Source of the DNA: Cyanophora paradoxa CCMP329
Taxonomy: Eukaryota; Plantae; Glaucophyta
Length of the DNA: 64,000 nt
Direction of reading: 5' to 3'
NCBI GenBank assembly: GCA_004431415.1
Contig: QPMI01000258.1
Location: 52,598-116,597, forward strand
Both the position numbers and the translations under genes were made by a program. The notes beneath the pieces are model-generated. The model had not been told where the DNA came from and made no database searches. It saw nothing but the letters and a program-made list of their open reading frames with translations. Positions 40,817-54,400 of this stretch are shown piece after piece (the first letter of the stretch is position 1; every line of letters starts with the position of its first letter).

Positions 40817-41028
40817 ACGCCCGCTACACAAGGGACGCGTACGCCTTAGCTACAAGCGAAACACGCGCGCAAAAGAGCGCGATCTACTGGTTGGTCCGCA
40901 TGAGTGGAGAGTCGACTGTACCCGCCCTGTCCGCGAAATTCGGCGAAAACCAGCCGCAAACAGAGCTAGGCCGCGCGGCGATGGTGCGCATGCTTGCACA
41001 GTGTAAACTATGACGTGACGCTCGCCTG

Positions 41029-43194
41029 ATGTTCGGGCGCAAGAAGTCGGTGCGCAGCGGATGTTGCCGACGCCGTAATCTGGATAAGCGCTGCTGCTTC
41101 CTTAGCTATTTAACTAGCGCGCGTATATGCTTTAAAGAGACAGCGAGATGCACTGCAGGGCAGCGCGCCCATAGCGTTGCAGTGCTCCGATCAAGTCGCT
41201 GACCTCTGGCACAGAACGACGGATCCGTTGGCGGCTCCTCGTCGCAGAAAAGCTCTTCCTCTGGTGCCAAAGCGCTCGGGGAGGGCAAGGCGGAGCACGC
41301 CGGCTCGCGCAGGAGCTCGAGCGACGAGGCGGCGGCAGAGGAGAACGGGCTGCGCCTGCTCGGGGACGCGGACCACCAGGACTCGGCGCGCGCGGTTGCG
41401 CATGGCGGGGCGCCCACGGCCACGGAGATCGCGCAGTACGGCATCTACCTCGGACTCAAGTACCCGGAGGACGCCTCGCTCGTTTGGATCGCAGAGCAGG
41501 CGATCCTCGCCCCGCTGCCCGGTCCGCCCTTCCCTCCAGCGCTCGCGCTCGCACCCGTCTGCAGGGTCCGGGCGCCTGAGACATGCGTGGCGCGCAGAGG
41601 GCTGGAGCGAGCACGTCGGGCCGCACGGGCAGATCTTCTACTACCACGAGAAGACGGACACGAGCCAGGCGGAGCACCCCGCCGACGATGTCTTCCGGTG
41701 CGGGGCCGGGCCAGGGCCACCGCGAGGCGGAGAGAGGCGCCTCACGTGCACGGGGCGGGGCGCGCAGAGCCATGATCCGCGAGCTTCGGGAGAAGCGGGC
41801 GGAGAAGGCGCGGCAGCAGCGGGCGCTGGAGGAGGCGCGCGCCGCGGAGCGCAGGACGGCCCTCGTCGCCTCCCTGCGCGCCGGCGCCTCGCCCCCGACC
41901 TCGCCCTCCCACGCCGGCCCCTCCCGCTCCCCTTCCTCGCCGGCCCCGGCGGCCCCCGCCGCCGCGAAGGTCTGCACGCCGGACGAGGTGCGCGCGGGCC
42001 GGCGCGGATGCAGGCTGTCATCGGAGCTGGAAGAAGGGCTGAGGCGGGGGCAGGTGCGGGACATGGCGGGGTTCCTGGGGATCGACGTGGAGCGGGAGGC
42101 GCACCTGCTCTGGATCGCCCGCGACACCCTCCTCGCCGCCCTGCCCGCCCCCTGGAGCGAGCTCGAGGCCCGCCCCCCCGCCCCCGCACGCCCCGCCCGC
42201 ACCCCACGCCCCGCCTCACGGCGCGGCGCAGGACGAGCAGGGGTGCCCGTACTACCACAACGCGCTGACGGGGGCGACGACGCGGCAGCACCCGCTCGAC
42301 GCCCCCACGCGCGGCAAGCTCCGCCGCGTGCGCGAGCTGCTGGCGGCCCGGGGCCTGCCGCAGCCCGGGGACGAGGACCACGCCCGCCTCGTGCGCTACA
42401 TCGCCGCCTCCCCGGCCCTCGACCTCTCGGTTCGTTCGCGCGCGCATCGCGGGACGGCCCCGGGTCGCCCGCCCTCGCCTGAGATCGCGCGTGGCGCAGG
42501 TGCCGGGGCGGCGGGGGCGCCGCGGCGCGTCTGGTGGGACTTCCTGAGGGAGGTGCCCCTGGAGGGGGAGCCCGACGGCCCCGCCCGCCTGCGCGCCGCC
42601 TCCCGCATTGCCGCCGCCTACCGCGCGGCCCGCGCCCGCCGCGCGCACGGGGCGGTCCTGCGGGGTCGGCGGGCGGCGCGGGCGGCCGGCGCGCTGCCGC
42701 CGCTGGTGTCCCTCGACGTGGCGTACGAGCGCTTCCGGCGGGGGCGGGAGGCGGGGCGGGGGGCGGCGGCGGGGCCGGGGCGCGAGGCCGGCGGCGTGCA
42801 CTACGACGCCGTCGTACCCTTCTACTTCGACCTGCCGGCGCCCTCAGGACCGGGGCCGGGGCCGGGGCCGGGGCACCTCCCCCCGCGCCCCCTCGGCCCG
42901 CCCCCTTCCAACGACACCCGCTTCTGGGCAACCAAGGCGTGCCCCCGCACATGCGCCCTTTCGCCCAGCGTTCTTGACGTGACATCCGCGCGCGCAGCTC
43001 CTGAACGATTTCAAGCGGCAGACCTCCATCTCCTAGCTCGAGCTCGGGCGCCGGCCCGAGTTATTTATTCGCCCCCTTGCTGTACACTATTCAATTTGCT
43101 TATTCGGATGCTATTGCTCGTTTCGCGGTTCATCGATCCATTGATCAGTCGGCGACTTGCTCGCGAGTGCAGAGCTAGAGCGATGCTGAAATAG
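41029..43194 (+). CDS. Protein with two CEP164-like helical+WW modules and an IQ-like motif
   Basis: PTATEIAQYGIYLG..LVWIAEQAILAPLP.GW..IFYYH..HPAD; EVRDMAGFLGID..LLWIARDTLLAALPAPW..PYYHN..HPLD; AASRIAAAYRAARAR. Boundaries uncertain. Confidence 0.7.
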
Positions 43195-43365
43195 CCGGGG
43201 TGGTTCAACGTATTGCACAAGTGGCCGCGGCTTGGGGCGCGGCCGGAGGGGTCGGGGCGGGCAGCGGACTGAGGGCCCGGGTGGGTGCGGGGCGGGGGCG
43301 GGGCGGGGGAGGGTGTGGGGCGGGCGGGGCGGGCGGGGGGGCGGGGCGGGCGGGGGGAGGGGCGC

Positions 43366-46324
43366 CTAGGCCTGGGCGACGTCGTCGAGGACCTTCTTGG
43401 CGCGGGTGAGGAGCTCGACGGACTTGGCGAGGCGCTTGCGCTGCTCCCCGATGGTGCCCTCCTCCTGCAGCAGGTCCCCGAACATGGTGTCCTTGAAGAG
43501 GGTGCTGATGAGGCGCTGCTCCAGCAGGTCCTTCACCTTGTTCACCATGAAGCACATGATCGCCTTGGGCACGCCGTCGATGATGTTCGAGCGCACGATG
43601 TTGAAGTACGTCTCCAGCAGCATCCGCGTCATCTCCAGCTCGATCTGCTCCTTCTTCGTCGCGTCGTCCAGCAGCGTCAGCTTCGTCGGCACGTTCGGCA
43701 GCACGTGCTCGTCGTCGTCGTCGGCCCGCTGCGGGCGCTGCTGCGTGCGCCCCGAGAGGCGCGGCGGCTCCTTCCCCTTCTTGTCCTTCTCCCAGAACTT
43801 CCAGTCGTCCTTGTCCTTGTCCGCGCGGCGCGGGTTCGGGCTGATGTCGCGCTCCAGCCGCTTCGCCTCCTCCGCCATCGTCTGCCCCCGCCCGTCAGGC
43901 CCTGCCCGAGGCCGGCGCGGCGCCGCGCGACCAAGCGGCGCACGTCCACGAGCGAGTGGAACTTGTCGCGCACGCTGTCCTTCGCCATGCTGAAGTCCGG
44001 GTGGTCCGTGTTCACGAACCCGAGCTCCTGCGCCGCCCCGGCGTCGGCGCGGCGCGGGGCGGGGCGGGGCGGGGCCGGGGCGGACGATGTTGATGAGGTC
44101 GTCGACGACGTCCTTGGTGGGGGTCTGGGACTCGCGGAGGAGCTCGTTGGCGATCTGGGTGACGCGCATCTTGAGGTTCGGGAAGCGGTCGAGCTCGGGC
44201 GAGTCGATCGACATCAGCAGGCGCCGCAGCTCGTTGTACACGAGGTCCACGCACTCCTGCGACGGCTGCTCCAGCAGCCTCACCTGCTTCTGCGAGATCT
44301 GCCCGCCCCGGGCGTCAGCGCGAGGCGGCAGAGGCGGGGGCGGCGGGGGGCGGGCCTGGATGAAGGGCTCCTCGGGGACGAAGAGGGGGGCGGAGGTGGC
44401 GCCCATGACGTTGCGGATGCAGGTGCGGATCTGGATGTCCGTGAGGCCCTCCAGCGCGTCCAGCCGCCGCACGGTGCTTGCGAAGATGTCGTTGAAGACG
44501 TACATGATCCGCGCCCCCCCGTACCTGCCCCGCCCCCTCAGGCCCATCCGGCCCGCGGAGCCGGGGGCGGGGGCGGGCGGACAGCTCGTCGATGGGGATG
44601 TCGAGCATGGTGCCATCGAGGGCATCGCGGAAGTCCTCGGCGTACGCGGAGAGGCACTGCAGCAGGATCGCGCCCTGCTCCGCCGGCGTGTTCGGGCCCT
44701 CCCCCAGCGCCTCCAGCTGCGTCTTGTACTCCTGCTGCATGTCGTTCACCTTGCGCTTGATCTCCGGCAGCGTGTTCTTGATGTGCTCCCCCAGCATCTG
44801 CCGCCGCCGCGCATCGGCGCCCTGGCGAGGAGCGGCGGGCGGGGCGGGCCGGGGCGGGCGGGGCACCCTGGAGAGCTTCTTGGCGAGCAGCTCGGTGCCG
44901 AGGGTGTGCGTGAGGTCCTTGTACACGGGGTGCGACATGAAGAAGGCCCGCTCCGCGTCCTTGGACGCCTGAATCGACTTCCGGCTGTTGATGTCCTGCT
45001 GGCTCCGGTTCACCACCCCGATGTACCCGCGCTTCAGGGGGATCACGCGGCCCGTCAAAATGTCTGCGCGCGGCGAGACAGGTCAGACGGCGCGGCGGGC
45101 GCGGTGTGTGTCGGGCCGCGGACCGGAGGCATCTGTGCCCTTGTCCATCAGATCCAGCTTCGTGATGACACCGACTGTCCGGTTGCCTGCAGCGAAGTCA
45201 GAGAGGAAGTCATGTGAGTACGATAACAAAGAGCAGACCATCAGGGTCCACCGCGCGCGCCAGCTGCAGCGCATCGGAATTTGCCAGATCGGTGTTGGCC
45301 GCTGTGACGGCCTGCGCGGCAAATCAGGGAGGAAAAAGAGGAGAGAAAGAAGCCACGCACAAGAATGATGGAGTTCGGGCGTGTGATGAACGAGAGCACC
45401 ATATCGCGAATGATTTGATCGATGTTCACGGGCTGGTCCCCTGGCAGAAGGCGTTAGCGTGTCTGACCGAATGCTGAGAGAAGAAAATACGAACCGACAG
45501 GCACTTTCGTGAGTCCGGGCAGATCGATGAGGGTCAGATTGACGACTGCGCAGGGGATCAATTCGACAACCGAAGGGAGGGATTGACATACACACCGTGA
45601 GGAGAATAGACACGAAGTGTGATAGGGTTCGGCGAGATGACCTGCCCGTGGCCGCAAATGCGATCCGTGTCGGCGATAATCTCTTCCCGGACAGCATCCC
45701 AGTTCGTGTACTGCTGCCCCGGTCTATGCTGGAACTCGGCGTATTCTGCAGGCGGAGTGAGCAATGCGCCAGCGGCGAGAATGTGAAGCGGCGGCGCGCC
45801 TTGTGTGCCTTGGGCGGTTTGGAACATCTGCAGGATACAGGGGCGACGAGTAACCAGCCCAGAGCCTCTGCAATGAGAGGACGCATGATTAAACTGCGGA
45901 ATGCACAACGTGGCCAGCGCGCAAACCGTGGCAAGAAATCGCGGCCTGCGTTTCGCCGTCAACAGTGCGAGCATGCGCGGCACGAGTGGCGGGGCACACC
46001 GACGAAGTTCTCCAGCACGGAGGATTTGCCCGACGACTGCCCGCCGACGACCGCTGCAAGTATACAATCAGACAGCCGAAGGCGCAGCCTCGGCAGCGGG
46101 GCCGCGGCCCACGCTCGAAACTCGAACGACATGCACAGAAGATGCTAGCAAGCTGGAAACGCACCGATTTGCGGAAGGTCGATGAGTTCATTCGGAGCCA
46201 TGCCCACTTGAGACAAGACATCCTTCGCGCGGCAGTCAAACACGGCCGCTGCATGAGAAAACACGCAAGATTAGCACACCTGAAGCCTGTTGACGAGCTG
46301 GATGAGGTCGTCGAGCTGCGCCAT
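43366..46324 (-). CDS. Dynamin-related GTPase (GTPase, middle and GED domains, no PH; Vps1/DRP1-like)
   Basis: LPQI.VVGGQSSGKSSVLE, GLVTRRP, LTLIDLPGLTK, TKLDLMD, GVVNRSQ, YGGARI, FVPE, YFNIVR.NIIDGVPKAIMCFMVN. Confidence 0.95.
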
Positions 46325-46538
46325 GGCGGCGGACTACGGAAGTGGTTCGCTGCCTGCGCGCTGCCGCCGGAGCTTCGCTGGTTCACGCGGCGAGCCCGTA
46401 CCTACGCCGCTTCGCCTGACACGGGCTACGTGGAGGCGGTCGGTCACCGGTACCTATGAATCGAACGACGTACCCCGAGCGAGTCCGGGTCCGAGCCGGG
46501 AGTCGGGTCTCTGTTGCGGCCCACAGTTCTTGGCCGCA

Positions 46539-49500
46539 ATGGACAAGCTTGTGAGCGACCCCCCGGCTCGTTTGTAACGCGCTGAACTGCTCGCAGATCC
46601 CGCTCATCAATAGTCTCCAAGATGTCTTGTGAGTCCTCCTGCCGCTGGCCGCGGCGCGCGAATTCGGCGACGCAGAACGCGCTAACATCACTTCGCAGTG
46701 CCCATCTTGGACTGACTTTCATCGACCTGCCGCAAATCGCGGTGCGCGGGTTTGCGTTCCACCTGAGCGCGCCCACCTGAAAGTCGAGCCACTCGTTCCG
46801 CCGTTCTCGTAGGTCGTCGGAGCCCAGTCTAGCGGCAAGTCTAGGTGTGTTTCTCGCCGCCGACCCCTCGCTCGTCCAGCGCCCGACCGCCCCGCAGTGT
46901 GCTCGAGAATGTCGTCGGCATCGATTTCCTTCCGCGTGGGTCCGGCATCGGTATGTCAGAAGTAGTTGTAGAGCGCGCTCCTGGTGTCGGTTGACCTGTC
47001 GCTCCGCAGTCACTCGCCGCCCTCTCGTTCTCCAGCTGTACAATCAGCCGGGGAGCGGTATGCGCGCTTAAATCGCATGCGCTCGATGCTTTCATTCATA
47101 GCTTGCGTCGCTCAGAGGAGTATGCCGAGTTCTTGCATGCCCCGGGCCGAAAGTGGTACAACTTCGAGGAGGTCCGCCAGGAAATCGTCGCGGATACTGA
47201 TCGCAAGACCGGCGGCAACCTCGGTATCTCTAATGATCCCATCAATCTGAAAATCTACTCGCCCAATGGTACGTTCGCGCTCCGCTTGTGATTTGATCCG
47301 CTCATTCTTTCGCCTCCCAGTTGTTAACCTTACGCTTGTCGATCTTCCTGGGCTGACGAAAGTGCCCGTCGGTGCGTGGGGGACCTTTACGCATCGCGCG
47401 GGCTTCTTGCTCACACACGCAAAGGGAACCAGCCTGCGGACATCGACCAGCAAATTCGCAACATGGTGATACACCACATTTCCAAGAAGAACACCATTAT
47501 TCTGGTCCGTTGGACAGTTTTCCAGGTCTCTGCTGTGAGCTGAACTCCGTGCAGGCCGTCACTGCCGCCAACACCGATCTTGCCAACTCCGACGCGCTCC
47601 AGCTCGGCAAGCAGGTCGACCCCGAGGGTGCTTTTCTACTCTTTGACCCTCTTTTCTTTCTTCGAGCTCACTTCTGTCGCAGGCGACCGCACTGTCGGCG
47701 TGCTGACGAAGCTGGACCTGATGGACCAAGGGACGGACGCCGGGGACATTCTCTCCGGGAAGACCCTGCCCCTCAAGCGCGGCTACATCGGCATCGTCAA
47801 CCGCAGCCAGAAGGACATCAACGACCGGCGCAGCATGGCCAACGCGAGGCAGAAGGAGCTCGAGTACTTCCACTCGCACCCCGTGTACAACCAGATGATG
47901 CACTGCTGCGGCACCTCCGTTCTCTCGACCAATCTGAACAAGGCACGCCGCCCGCCTCTCGCCCGAAACCTACGCTCCTGACCGCCCCCGCCTCGCAGAT
48001 CCTCATCCAGCACATCAAGACGAACCTGCCGGAGATTCGGCGTACCGTCGAGACCAAGCTGGACTCTGTGATGAAGGAGCTGGACGAGCTGGGCGGCCCT
48101 CGCTCCGATGACAAGGTCGGCCCCCGGCGCTCAGGGCTCCTCCCCGGCACCCTCTCACGAAACCGTCCTCTTAGAAAACGGAGCTGGTCAAGCTGCTGAA
48201 GAAGTATGCGAACGAGTTCCGTGCGGTGATCGAGGGCAAGTCCCAGGAGGTGTGGCTGACGAGCGGCGAGCTGTGCGTGCCCCCCCGCCCCGCCCTCCCG
48301 CGCCGCTGGCGGCGAGCCCCGCCGCAGGAAGGGAGGGGCGCGCATTCGTTACATCTTCACGGACATCTTCGTGCCCGCCATCCAGGAGCTCAACCCGCTC
48401 GAGGGCCTGAAGGACGAGGGTCCGCCCTGTCCATCCGGGGGTCCGGCGGGCGGCGCTGAGGGGCCTTGGGGGCAGAGATCATCAACGTGATCCGGAACGG
48501 GGCGGGCGTGAGCGGCGTGGGGACGATGCTGGTGCCGCGGATCGTGATCTCGCTGATCCAGCGGACGCTGGCGCGGTTCAAGGACCCGAGCCAGGAGTGC
48601 ATCAAGCTGGTGCGGGACGAGCTGCTCAAGATCTCGACGATGTGCGGGACGAAGCCGCTCTCCCGCTACGAGGACCTGCGCTCCGCCGTCCTCAACGAGG
48701 TCACCAACTACCTCAACCAGCAGTACACCCTCTGCCTCACCAAGGTCAACAACATCATCGAGATGCAGATGTCCTTCATCAACCTCGGTCCGCCCCGCCC
48801 GCCGCCCCGCCCTCGCCCGCGCCGCCCCCGCGCGCCCCTCTCTGACGTCAGGGCAGAGCACCCGGAGTGCCAGCGGGTGATCATGGCGATCAACCAGGAC
48901 CCGTCGCTGCTGACCAAGAAGGACGGCTTCTTCAAGAAGACCGAGAAGTTCGTCAAGAGCATCGTGCGCCCCGCCCCGCCCCGCCCCGCCGGCGACGCGC
49001 GCCCCGCCGACGCGCCCTGCAGCCGGTGCCCGACGTGGGGAAGAAGGACATCTCGCGGGAGACGAACGCGGTGAACCCAAGCGAGTCGCAGCGGAACCTG
49101 GCGGGGCAGACCAAGGCCGGCTGGCTTGAGAAGCAGGGCGCCAACTTCAAGGGGTGGAAGAAGCGCTACTTCCTGTACGACGGGACGCACTTCCACTGGT
49201 TCAACACCGACCAGAAGGGCGAGAAGGCCCGCGGCTCGCTCCCCATGCGGGACGCCCAGGTCCGCGAGGTCAACGGCAAGGACGGTGCGCCCCGCCGAGG
49301 CCCCCGCGCGCGCCCGCCCGCCCGCCGGGCGGCGCCGACCGACGCGGCGCAGGCTTCGTGTTCAGCGTCCGGACGCGGGAGCGCGAGATGTCGCTCCGCG
49401 CCGACACCGACAAGGAGCGCCGCGAGTGGGTCGCCCTCCTCAGCGCCTCCGGCCAGCCAGTGCGTCTTGCGCAGCGCCGCCCGCCCCGCCCCGCTGCGGG

Positions 49501-51131
49501 CGGCGCCGAGCGGTGCGCAGCTGCAGGACGAGCAGAAGGACGAGGAAGACGAGGAGGCAAAGCGGAAGGCGGACAAGGACAAGAAGAAGAAGGAGAAGGA
49601 GGAGGAGGAGGAGCGCGAGCGCGAGGAGAAGGAGCGTGAGAAGCGGGAGAAGAAGGGCCAGGGCCCGGACCCCTCGAAGATGTTCGGGGGCCAGTTCACG
49701 CAGCCGCCGAAGCCCGTCCGCAAGGTGGTCAACTACAGCGGCGGCTCGTCGGGCCCGACGAAGCGGCAGCCGCGGCGGCGCGGGGGCAGCCTCCTCGCCC
49801 GCTACCCCGTCCCCGAACACCTCCAGATCCACCTTCCCGACGTCCGCTGCCCCTCCAGCCCCTCCCGGGGCCCGCCATCCCGCTGACCCCCGCCCCGCAG
49901 GTCCCCTACTCAATCCGCCCGCCCGTCGCCCAGCGCGAGCTGCAGATGCTCGCCACCGCCAGTGCGCCCCGCCCCGCCCTCCGTGCTCAAGGCGGCCCGG
50001 CGCCTATACGAATGGGCGCGCAGAGGCGCAGCTGGGGGCGTACTTCCACGTGGTGCGGAAGATCGTGCGGGACTTGGTGCCCAAGTCGGCGATGAACTTC
50101 ATGGTGAACGAGGCCAAGCTCGGCATGTCCTTCCTCGTCGGTGTCATGTCCGCCAAGGCGAGCCCGCCCCCGCCCGCCCCGCCCGAGCCCTCCCCCCACC
50201 GGCTGACGATCCGCGCAGGACAACCTGGACGAGCTGATGCGCGAGTCGTCGGCGATCGCGGCGCAGCGGGACAAGCTCGACCAGCAGCTGAAGGCGCTGC
50301 AGCGTGCGCAGAAGATCCTGCAGGAGGCGCAGAACCTCGACGAGGGCTCCGTCGCCTCCGGCATGAAGAAGCTCGACCTCCCGCCCCCGGGCTCCCTCCC
50401 CTCCTTCCCCGCCCCCTCCCCGCCCACCTCCTTCTCCGCCCCGCCCACCTCCGCCCCGCCCCTCCCCGCCCGCCCCGCCGCCCCCGCCGGGCCGGGCTTC
50501 TTCCCGGGCAGCCAGCCGGCGCCGGGGCCCCCGTCGCCGCCGCGGCCGCGCCGGCGCCGGGAGGCTTCGGCTTCCCGCAGGCGGCCCCCGCCGCGCCGGC
50601 GCCGGGCTACCCCGGCTTCCCCGGGCGGCGCCGGGGCAGCCGAACCCCTTCTTCGCGGCGCAGCAGGCGGCGCAGCAGGCGGCGCAGCAGGCCGGCCAGC
50701 AGGCAGTGAACACGGCGGCGGCGGTGGGCACGCAGGCGGCGGCGGCGCACCTCGCGGCGCAGTACGGCCTGCCGCAGGGGGCGGCGTCGGCGGCGGCGTC
50801 GGCGGCGACGCCGGCGGTGGCGAACGCGATGACCAACGCGGCGGCGGCGGCGATCGCGTCGAAGCCCAACCCGGCCGCCTACCTCTCCTCCATCCCCGGC
50901 GGGGTCACCCTCCCCACCTCCTCCTCCCCCACCGGCGTCCGCCCGGGCTCCCCCGAGACGCCCACGGGGGCGGCCGGCGCCAAGCCCACCGACTGGATGT
51001 CCATGTTCGCCTCGGCGCGGGGCGCGGCCGGCGGTCCTGCCGTCACCAAGTCCCCCTCCATCCCGGAGGCGCTCAGCAAGAACACGCCGGCGGCGCCCGC
51101 CATGCCCTCCTTCCCCTTCATGAAGAAGTGA
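46539..51131 (+). CDS. Dynamin with PH domain, GED and proline-rich tail (classical dynamin-like architecture)
   Basis: [35 protein letters not shown]; PH domain [35 protein letters not shown]; [26 protein letters not shown]; Pro/Ala-rich tail with NPFF. Confidence 0.92.
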
Positions 51132-51407
51132 GGGCCCGGCCCCGGCCCCGGCGCGGCCCAGCGCCCCGCCCCTGTACAATTCCCACCGGCCAGCCGTGTA
51201 GACTAGCCGCTCCCCATGTGTTACCCTGCATGTACAACCACACACGAATTCGAACCGATCGCATTGCCCAGTGTGTGCATGCGCATCGTGCATGTGGCAT
51301 GCATGGGTCCTATTCGAATTGTGCAGAAACAACAGAACTACGAAGACAGCGGTATATGCAGCGGTTACTTACGGGCGGGGCTTCGAGCGTCAATCGCGAT
51401 CGCGGGG

Positions 51408-54400
51408 TCAGAGGTCGGCGCGGAAGGCGCAGTCGAAGTCGGCCTCCGCCGCGTCCTCAGCGAGCGCCCCGCACTCTTCCTCCTCCAGCGCCCCCAGCTG
51501 CGCACCCGCCCCCGCCGCCGCTCGCTCCGGCGCGGGGCGGCGAGGGCGGGGCGGGGCCGCGCACCGGCAGGCCGCCGGCCTCGCACGACTCGACGAGGGC
51601 GTAGCGCGTCTCGTACATGTCCTGCCGCGCCCGTCAGGCTGCAGTCATTCTGAGCGCGCTGGGGGAAGGCGCGCACGAGGTAGCGCGGGGTGGCCGGCAC
51701 GAGGTCGGCCGCGGCCCCGCTGCGCGTGGGGTGAGGGGCGCTGCCGGGGGCGAGTGGCGGGGCGGGGAGAGGCGGGGCGGACGGGGCGAAGGCGGCGGGG
51801 CCGGGGAGGGCGGGGGCGGAGGCGGCGTGGAGGATGCCGTCGGCGTCGAGGGCCTCGTCGAGGACCTGCAGGGCCCCCGCCTCCAGCTGGAAGACCGGGT
51901 AGCTCGCCGGCTCCGCCGACAGGTGCTTGATCCGCACCACGCCTGCACCCCCCCGCCCCGCACGCTCGCAGGAGGAGGCGGGCGGGGCGGGGCGGGGCCG
52001 CACGGGTGCCGGAGCTGTGGTCGCCGAAGGAGAAGAAGGGGCGCGACTGGATGACGACCGGCGTGCACGTCGCCGCCTCGTGCACCTGCGCGGGGCCGGC
52101 CGCGTCGGCGCTGGCCGGACGCGGCGGGGGGGGCGGGGCGGGCGGACGGGGGCCGGGGTGCAGGCGGGCTGGGCCGGGGTGCAGACGGGCTCGCGGGGCA
52201 CGCAGGTCTGGGCAGCCTCCACGCGGCACGTCGGCCCGCACCCGTCGCCGCCGGCCCCGTTCCCGTCGTCGCCTGCCGCCCCGCGAGAATGAGAGGCGCT
52301 GCCTCGCCGCTCGCGGGGCGGCGCAGGCGGGAGGGGACAGGCGCCGCGCACACTCCTCGCCCCCGTTGCGGACGCCGTCGCCTGCGAAAGCGCGCGCCGG
52401 CGGGTCAGGGGCGGGGGCCCCGCGCCGTGCGGGGGGGCGCACCGCAGAAGGGGAGGCGGTGGCAGTCGTCGCCGCAGCGGCCGCCGCGGCTCCCGTTCGC
52501 CGGCTCCCCCTCGTCGCACTCCTCCCCCGTGTCCAGGATCTGGCAGCCGGCGCCGCCTCTCAGGCGGCGGGGCGGGGCGGGGCGGGGCGGGCGGGGCGGG
52601 CGGGGCGGACGGCGTTGCCGCAGGCGGGGATGTAGATGGAGCGGCAGTCGAAGGTGCAGGTGGAGCCGGCGGCGCCGTTCTTCTCCGCGCCGGCGTCGCA
52701 CGCCTCGCCGGCGTCCACCACCCCGTTCCCGCACCGCGCCACGTAGTCCGCCGCGCACTCGCTGCTGCACCCGCTGCGCCCCAGACGCGCCCCGTCAGCA
52801 CGCGCGCTCGAGCGAGTCGACAGGGTCCCGCCGGCACCTGTTCGGGACGCCGTTCGAGGGGCCCAGGTCGCAGTCCTGCCGGCCGGCGGTTGGGGGGATC
52901 AGGGCGGGGGCCCGGGCGGGGCCGCGCGGGGCGGGGGCAGGGGCGCGCCTCGCCCTCATCGACGACGCCGTTGCCGCAGTGGCCGACGTAGACGACGCGG
53001 CACGACGCCGAGCAGCTCGACCCGTGCGCCCCGTTCGCCGCCCCCAGGTCGCACCTGCGCCCCGCCGTCAGATCCGTATGCAACGGAGGAGCGAGCCGGC
53101 GCGAGGGCGCCGCACTCTTCGCCGCCCGTGCGGGTGCCGTCCCCTGCAGGGCCGTCGGTCAGTCGGGTCGGCCAGGCGGGGCCTGCTCCGCGGACGGCTC
53201 GGCACGAACCGCAGAAGGGGGCGACGCGGCACTCTGCGGAGCAGTGGCTCGTGGGCCGCCCGTTGAGCTCCCCCGAGTCGCACTCCTGCGGCCCGAGAGG
53301 GCGGGTCAGGGCTCAGAGGCGGCGCGCGCGCGGGCCGGCGCCGCCGGGCGACCTCGCTGCCGTTCAGCTTGCCGTCGCCGCCTGCCCCGCTCGTCAGCCG
53401 GCTCGAGCCGGGGCGGGGCGAAGGGCGCTCGTGGCTCACAGTAGGGGAGGCGGGAGCAGGTCTCCGAGCAGTGCGAGTTGGGGGCTCCGTTCTTCGGCCC
53501 CTCGTCGCTGCGGGGAGGCAGCCGGCGTGAGCGCTCCCCAGGTGACGCGAAGCGCAGCCGCGGGCAGGCGCGCGGAGCCGCACCAGAACTCGCCGTGGTC
53601 CAGCACTCCGTTCCCGCACTGCGGCACGTACGCCTGCCGGGCCAAGGGCGCCACGTCAGCCGACCGGCGGGGGCGGCGGCAGAGAGCGGGGCGGGGCGGG
53701 CCTTGTGGCAGTCGATGGCGCAGCCGGAGGAGGGCGCGCCGTTCTCGTCGCCCTTGTCGCACCTGCCGGGCCGGCTCGCGTCGGCCGGGGCGGGGGGAGC
53801 GCCGGCGCACGGGGCGCACTCCTCGCGGCCGTTTCGGATGCCGTCCCCGCCTGCCGCGGCCCTCAGCGACAGGAAGAGGAGGCGAGAGAGCGGGGGCGGG
53901 AGGGGCGGACAGTGGGGCGCCACCGTGCAGTCGGCGGTGCAGTGCGAGGGGCTCGCCGCCGTCCCGTTGAGCGCCCCGTCGTCGCCTGCCGCGCCCGTCA
54001 GCCGCCGGCGAGCGTCCCCGCGCCCTTCCCCTCGCCCTCCCGCTCACACTTCTCGGAGCCCGTCTTCAGCCCGTCGCCGCCTGCGCCGGCCCCGCGTGAG
54101 CGGGCGGCGCAGAAGAGGGGCCGGCGGGCCGGCGGGGGCGGACAGTAGCGCTCGAAGCGGCAGGCGGCGGAGCAGTGGCTCTCCGAGGCATCCGTCCCGT
54201 TGGCCGCCCCGTCGTCGCCTGCCCGCGCCCCGCGCTGTGAGCAGCTGCCGGCGCCGCGCTGGGGGAGGCGGCGCGTACACTCCTCGCCCTCCCCGAGGGC
54301 CCCGTCGCCGCAGTGCGGCATCACCGCGCACTCGGCGCTGCAGTGCGACGGGTTCTCCTCCGCGTCCCGGCTCCCGTTCTCGTGCCCCTCGTCGCACTCC

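Follow-up and report, generated by a model that had tools for sequence, protein, structure and literature searches.

Dynamins with a pleckstrin homology (PH) domain and a proline-rich domain (PRD) are found, according to textbook accounts, only in animals and in plant DRP2, and it is debated whether this classical architecture arose once or several times. Where, then, does such a dynamin in a glaucophyte come from? The question is raised by a 64-kb window of the Cyanophora paradoxa CCMP329 genome (contig tig00001086; nuclear DNA, 60–82% G+C), in which two dynamin genes lie head to head: gene A, whose product has no PH domain, and gene B, whose product has the classical layout. All coordinates below are positions in this window. 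Gene B is a real, expressed, glaucophyte-conserved and lineage-specific dynamin that probably reached the classical architecture by convergence. In the reading that we favor, with a probability of about 0.6, A is a fission-type dynamin and B is a glaucophyte-wide scission dynamin that gained its PH domain and tail independently of animal dynamin; the structures of the genes, their splicing, architecture, and conservation, and the PH subtype are observed, and on top of these we infer lipid binding, adaptor binding, the cellular role, and the duplication history.

Transcript and domain structure of gene B

Gene B lies on the plus strand (46539–51131; ATG at 46539, stop codon at 51129–51131). It was modeled from RNA-contig joints and orthologue alignment as 22 exons encoding approximately 1120 amino acids. 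Public Cyanophora sequencing runs were compared with positions 45850–51250, namely three RNA runs from three studies (X1, X3, and X6) and one DNA run (X15). Each RNA run covered approximately half of the sequence words of this interval and gave one contig of 2.7–2.8 kb, in which the GTPase, middle, PH (exon 49023–49283), linker, and GTPase effector domain (GED) exons stand in a single molecule. The contigs skip 46551–46596, 46629–46698, and further intervals with GT..AG ends (once GC..AG), and none of the splice joints was present in the DNA run. The PH exons, which the first-pass annotation had allowed might not belong to the dynamin mRNA, are thus spliced into it. Fifteen introns were taken directly from the joints of the RNA contigs, and the positions of six others were deduced from the lengths of the contigs, canonical splice sites, and orthologue similarity. 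Local alignment, trees, and profile search were performed with the joined model, and database searches with single exons or with database orthologues.

The tail is carried by a second RNA contig (50474–51125), which overlaps the X6 contig extending to 50532. In RNA contigs of X1 and X3, from two studies, one additional G follows 50523 and one follows 50622 (50523–50623, plus strand), both within G/C runs. With both bases added, the reading frame passes from 2 to 1 to 0 and reaches the stop codon at 51129–51131 with a C-terminus that is conserved among orthologues; if they are omitted, the frame continues with neither stop nor homology. At each site the assembly has probably lost one nucleotide, although the DNA evidence there is thin.

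The encoded protein begins with a GTPase domain with a canonical P-loop (46733–47720, exons 3–11; Pfam Dynamin_N), followed by the middle, or stalk, domain (47739–48870; Dynamin_M on the exon open reading frames). The PH domain (49098–49447) is encoded by exons 17 and 18, with an intron at 49285–49352 within it; exon 17 alone scored 33.5 bits with Pfam PH. Then come a Lys/Glu-rich charged linker (49521–49664, residues 645–692, recognized from the translation and covered by RNA contigs), a conserved block preceding the GED and the GED itself (49785–50335, exons 19–22; Pfam GED on the exon pieces), and a Pro/Ala-rich tail (50351–51128). The tail comprises 260 residues, 19% of them Pro and 27% Ala. 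A motif scan located PPLPAR (50456–50473), NPF (50643–50651, read as NPFF), and DWMSMF (50991–51008) in it, and it ends in KK. This is the order of domains, including the Pro-rich tail with NPFF, that the first-pass annotation had read from the letters, and Pfam, translation, and motif scan all agree with it.

The GTPase domain of B is canonical: it scored 395–424 bits against Dyn1 and DymA and is 62–63% identical to animal dynamins and 58–74% identical to its orthologues. When the stalk and GED were compared with sequences of solved structures in the PDB, the best scores were obtained with human DNM1L (150 bits) and CmDnm1 (148 bits), vs. 92–104 bits with dynamin-1/3. In the stalk and GED, B is therefore most similar to the Drp1/Dnm1/DRP3 proteins, from which it differs in having a folded PH domain in place of a variable insert and in the 260-residue tail.

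Neither HMMER with the exact 104-residue middle-domain exon nor searches with two orthologues of B (P0121 and P0233, see below) retrieved a full-length Cyanophora B protein from the collections searched. A gene B model of at least 460 amino acids does not seem to exist in protein collections, and shorter fragments are possible. Gene A is present in EukProt, and its neighbor may be missing from public annotation or fragmented there. In the Cyanophora genome paper (PMC6704402), a DRP5A-like protein is the only dynamin mentioned, and literature searches on glaucophytes together with dynamin and PH or endocytosis gave no description of the B protein.

Orthologues of gene B in other glaucophytes

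When the 104-residue middle-domain exon was compared with the whole library by HMMER, a single match reached E ≤ 1e-10, namely P0121 (53% identity), from a third glaucophyte-like transcriptome. P0121 has 837 residues with Dynamin_M, PH (63 bits), GED, and a Pro/Ala tail; its N-terminal GTPase part lies in a shifted frame on the same transcript contig (L001). A search with the middle, PH, and GED part of P0121 led to P0233 (1064 residues) and P0234 (1082 residues), both complete transcripts with the full architecture. Beyond these two, no PH-bearing protein was present among the 120 best matches of this search, all of at least 283 bits. P0233 belongs to Gloeochaete wittrockiana (EukProt EP00276), and P0234 and P0345 (loci L005 and L006) come from the same two Gloeochaete samples. 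Gloeochaete thus has two B-type transcripts, B1 (P0233) and B2 (P0234/P0345), as well as one A-type transcript (P0384). Since both types occur in Gloeochaete, the A/B pair predates the split of Cyanophora and Gloeochaete.

The PH domains of the B orthologues scored 45–63 bits with Pfam. The block preceding the GED and the C-terminal DWMxMF...KK were common to all four B-type proteins compared (P0121, P0233, P0234, and Cyanophora B). Their tails contain 19–29% Pro, and in three of the four exactly one PPxPxR is followed by one NPF. Judged from these sequences, the architecture of B is a family trait of glaucophytes.

Origin of the PH domain

We built a profile from the PH domains of the glaucophyte proteins and compared it with PDB sequences. 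The best matches were myosin X (59.9 bits) and TAPP1 (56.6 bits), with GRP1 at 35 bits; centaurin, pleckstrin, cytohesin/GRP1, and DAPP1 were also matched. No dynamin was found among the best 60 matches. Run locally, the same profile gave 130 bits for Cyanophora B and 2–7 bits for the PH domains of animal dynamins. An AlphaFold model of the domain (predicted local distance difference test score of 87) had the standard PH fold of seven strands and one helix, and its best fold match was again TAPP1 (template modeling score 0.81), with no dynamin in the best 50. In a PDB search with the stalk of B, the PH domain of dynamin was left unaligned and that of TAPP1 was aligned. A feature search of the ESM Atlas with the PH domain retrieved only generic PH clusters with scores below 0.9.

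The domain shares with the PH domains of TAPP1, DAPP1, and cytohesin the basic strand motif K-x-G...K-x-W-K-K/R-R-Y/F-F. Those domains are parts of adaptor or exchange-factor proteins, whereas that of B sits inside a dynamin stalk. By sequence and predicted fold, we assign the PH domain of gene B to a TAPP1/DAPP1-like type and not to the dynamin PH subfamily. Glaucophytes most likely acquired it from an ordinary PH protein that binds phosphoinositides, and did so independently of animals.

The likeness to animal and holozoan dynamins (DNM1-3, shibire, and Creolimax CFRG3188) lies in the layout: GTPase, middle domain, a PH domain at the tip of the stalk, GED, and a Pro-rich tail with an SH3-ligand motif. 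In addition to the type of the PH domain and a stalk nearer to Drp1, B differs from them in its long Lys/Glu linker and conserved pre-GED block and in its tail, which is Ala-rich, has a single PxxPxR and one NPF, and ends with DWMxMF.

PH-bearing dynamins were also encountered outside glaucophytes. P0399 from Trimastix marina (EP00771 P001598; 1107 residues) combines an N-terminal RA/FERM module with a complete dynamin in which a PH domain stands between the middle domain and GED. P0169 (L002, 87–2443; GCA_030267505.1, BRYB01000699.1) is the product of an intron-containing gene with Dynamin_M, PH (62 bits), and GED and has no Pro-rich tail; its PH domain, at 11 bits, bears no relation to that of glaucophytes. 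According to Langley et al. 2025, in which glaucophytes are unmentioned, PH domains occur only in animal Dyn and plant DRP2. The similar statement of the first-pass annotation, that PH dynamins are characteristic of animals, their relatives, and plant DRP2, proved too narrow in view of these two proteins, which indicate that insertion of a PH domain at the stalk-tip site is evidently recurrent.

Gene A encodes a dynamin of the Drp1/Dnm1/DRP3 type

Gene A lies on the minus strand (46324–43366; ATG at 46324, stop at 43366). A 419-residue open frame that spans the gene's 3′ half led to P0001 (EukProt EP00741_Cyanophora_paradoxa_P007100, tig00001086_g6871.t1), a protein of 684 amino acids that maps on 16 exons without a mismatch. 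The introns are 49–111 nt long with GT/GC..AG ends. Pfam detected Dynamin_N, Dynamin_M, and GED and no PH domain, as the first-pass annotation had it. Between the middle domain and GED, where a PH domain would sit, there is a disordered charged insert of approximately 60 residues, and there is no PRD.

In comparison with solved structures, the GTPase half of A was generically dynamin-like, and the stalk with GED scored 199 bits with CmDnm1 of Cyanidioschyzon (6FGZ), 189 bits with human DNM1L, and approximately 105 bits with dynamin-1. The best named matches were oomycete "dynamin-1-like" proteins, fungal DNM1, and plant DRP3A. Because of the PH-less layout and a stalk score about twice as high to Drp1/Dnm1 as to classical dynamin, we class gene A, on its sequence, as Drp1/Dnm1/DRP3-type. 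Dynamins of this type divide mitochondria and peroxisomes in other organisms. By analogy, gene A most likely severs these organelles in Cyanophora.

Phylogenetic position

The combined maximum likelihood tree was built from 37 proteins and 662 conserved columns. The two A-type proteins (support 100/99) and the four B-type proteins (100/100) were united at 98/99, and the dynamins of animals and Creolimax formed a separate clade (100/100). The backbone was without resolution, also in the stalk-only tree, and this includes the position of gene A relative to the Drp1/DRP3 clade. In the GTPase-only tree, the six glaucophyte proteins clustered together (98), and Gloeochaete B2 stood beside Gloeochaete A (99). 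The conserved domains alone would favor an origin of B within glaucophytes without proving it.

Arrangement of the two genes and sequence exchange

The start codon of gene A (46324, minus strand) and that of gene B (46539, plus strand) are separated by 214 bp (46325–46538), which we presume from the gene models and the 5′ ends of RNA contigs to be a shared bidirectional promoter. The RNA contigs of gene B begin at 46483–46521, and its 5′ untranslated region therefore extends to 46483 or beyond, leaving at most approximately 160 bp to the ATG of gene A. A repeat check of the stretch between the ATGs gave nothing notable, and no Rfam family or tRNA was found in 41000–53500. The Cyanophora genome has been described as GC-rich, with numerous short introns and a dense arrangement of genes at a mean spacing of 770 bp (PMC6704402).

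In an alignment of 672 positions, the two proteins share 46% identity, and six introns of the two genes occupy the same alignment column in the same phase. These include the four named in the first-pass annotation; the two others are LSR|ML vs. LNK|IL (phase 0) and a site just before GGAR (phase 2). The two genes are expressed, divergently transcribed dynamin paralogues, and the gene models confirm the spacing of about 214 bp between ATGs that had been proposed. Their head-to-head order most likely stems from an old inverted tandem duplication or an old linkage that still permits sequence exchange.

Base composition changes along both genes (43366–51131). The G+C content of the introns rises from 0.45–0.75 near the shared 5′ ends to 0.8–0.95 toward both 3′ ends, and this gradient produces a G+C trough centered on the promoter region between A and B. 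The introns of both genes are C-rich on the sense strand of the respective gene.

Exchange between the two types was found in Gloeochaete by sliding comparison. Residues 1–275 of Gloeochaete B2 are 85–92% identical to Gloeochaete A, and the rest of the protein is 75–85% identical to B1, with the breakpoint near the boundary of the GTPase and middle domains. Gloeochaete B2 is therefore a natural chimera, and a GTPase domain has moved between A and B in this alga.

In Cyanophora, a possible counterpart concerns exon 9 of gene A (45239–45311, minus strand), of which public contigs contain a variant. The tract compared was 45262–45319 in gene A vs. 47547–47604 in exon 10 of gene B. A DNA contig of X15 that extends from gene B into gene A is collinear with the window, and the first 58 nt of its exon 9, with 8 intron bases included, are identical to gene B. 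RNA contigs of all three RNA runs depart from gene B at 47604 and continue as gene A sequence. The B-like tract may reflect gene conversion in one allele or a difference between strains, and it hints that exchange between A and B continues in Cyanophora. The cross-over at 47604 also suggested gene conversion within the window itself. This was rejected, as the two exon copies of the window are only approximately 82% alike, with no exact match over 20 nt, and the tract occurs only in the public contigs. All of the differences are synonymous.

Proposed role of gene B and alternative explanations

Independent assembly of the classical architecture in glaucophytes is likely because the PH domain is spliced into the dynamin mRNA, the layout is conserved in glaucophytes, the PH domain belongs to another subfamily, and B falls outside the animal clade in the best trees. 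In the role that we prefer, B would polymerize through its stalk on membrane necks, forming helices as in solved dynamins. The PH domain at the tip of the stalk would anchor it to phosphoinositide-marked membrane. The tail may bring it to sites with SH3 and EH adaptors through its class II SH3-ligand motif and its NPF, the kind of motif that is bound by EH domains. Hydrolysis of GTP would then drive scission of endocytic or post-Golgi buds. We put the chances that B serves in the scission of vesicles, either at the plasma membrane or at endosomes, at roughly even.

Several results weigh against this reading. The trees contained no plant DRP1, plant DRP2, or fungal Vps1, and the grouping of A with B in them rests mostly on the GTPase domain. 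As this domain moves between A and B, concerted evolution could give a false sister relationship. In the stalk-only tree, B formed a long unplaced branch that joined neither A nor animal dynamin. Comparison with the described clades, as proposed in the first-pass annotation, placed B outside the animal Dyn clade in the best trees, but approximately unbiased (AU) tests did not reject a union of B with animal Dyn (p = 0.31 with 61 rows; p = 0.073 with 37 rows, at a likelihood drop of 20.7 units). As to the tail, P0121 is without strict SH3 and NPF motifs, and part of the tail of Cyanophora B depends on two bases absent from the window.

The AU tests bear directly on the possibility that B is a surviving orthologue of the classical dynamin of animals and holozoans, inherited from early eukaryotes and lost in most lineages, which would also fit the identical domain order and the 62–63% identity of the GTPase domains. 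We consider this very improbable: the best trees placed B with glaucophyte A (98/99), Dyn stood elsewhere in the stalk-only tree, the stalk of B is closer to Drp1 than to Dyn (150 vs. approximately 100 bits), and the glaucophyte PH profile separates the PH subfamilies (2–7 bits for Dyn vs. 57 for TAPP1). Descent from the plant DRP2 (or DRP1/DRP2) lineage, with a PH dynamin already in the ancestor of Archaeplastida and A/B as a parallel of DRP1/DRP2, is unlikely, though less remote. Plants belong to the same supergroup and have, in DRP2A/B, a PH and PRD dynamin with the same domain order, Pro-rich tail included, beside PH-less dynamins; the ancestral plant DRP1/2 has been suggested to have carried a PH domain (Langley et al. 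2025). In the same study, however, DRP2 is reported absent from green algae, and the GTPase domain of DRP2 is described as strongly diverged (PMC1277907, PMC11789081), whereas that of B is canonical. Among canonical dynamins, the GTPase of Arabidopsis DRP1A was the least similar one (306 vs. 347–424 bits). The 120 best matches of the search with the B-type middle, PH, and GED part included many Viridiplantae DRP3 and no DRP1 or DRP2, which were within the length filter. A link of B to plant DRP2 therefore appears unlikely from the sequences compared.

Two other explanations concern function rather than descent, and both seem improbable to us. One is that B acts in cytokinesis or in division of the cyanelle outer envelope, standing in for DRP5B, which is absent from glaucophytes. 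DRP5A and DRP5B also have a PH domain between the middle domain and GED. Cyanophora is without DRP5B, and the mechanism by which its outer envelope is constricted is unexplained (PMC6704402, PMC4164004). Affinity to the DRP5 group nevertheless appeared in no search, the SH3-ligand and NPF motifs of the tail are typical of endocytic adaptors, and the PH domain looks, by sequence, to be of the plasma-membrane/endosome phosphoinositide type. The other sees in A and B a two-component endocytic machine whose parts would be co-regulated and assemble together. Start codons 214 bp apart, at most approximately 160 bp of shared upstream DNA, RNA contigs covering both genes, and GTPase domains interchangeable between A and B in Gloeochaete would all agree with it. 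The stalk of A is, however, of the Drp1/Dnm1 type, none of the searches brought up a second Cyanophora protein of the Drp1 type, and Cyanophora genes are densely packed anyway. As gene A looks like an organelle-fission dynamin, a system of the DRP1 plus DRP2 kind is unsupported. Of the first-pass idea of an independently evolved, two-component endocytic dynamin system, the independent origin stands as likely, given the PH subfamily, the Drp1-like stalk, and the trees, but the two-component part does not.

A bolder extension of the favored reading, in which B is an independently assembled scission dynamin, would treat the pair as a co-evolving unit. A scission dynamin with a PH domain and a Pro-rich tail would have arisen from a Drp1-type parent and remained head to head with it since before the Cyanophora–Gloeochaete split, with a shared promoter region of approximately 160 bp and continued swapping of sequence between the two genes (an entire GTPase domain in Gloeochaete B2, 58 nt in Cyanophora), as a third independent origin of an endocytic dynamin. 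We regard this as possible though doubtful.

Significance of the glaucophyte B family

For annotation, the locus carries two practical flags: a full-length gene B model is absent from the collections searched, and the assembly probably has two single-base errors in the tail. The weight of the finding is limited by the occurrence of stalk-tip PH insertions in other protists. The glaucophyte B family would be an additional case of convergent domain assembly, in which the same layout was reached with a TAPP1-type PH domain and a Drp1-like stalk. It may also give a new point of comparison for the ancestral state of Archaeplastida, and it offers a natural test of how strongly dynamin function depends on which PH domain is present.

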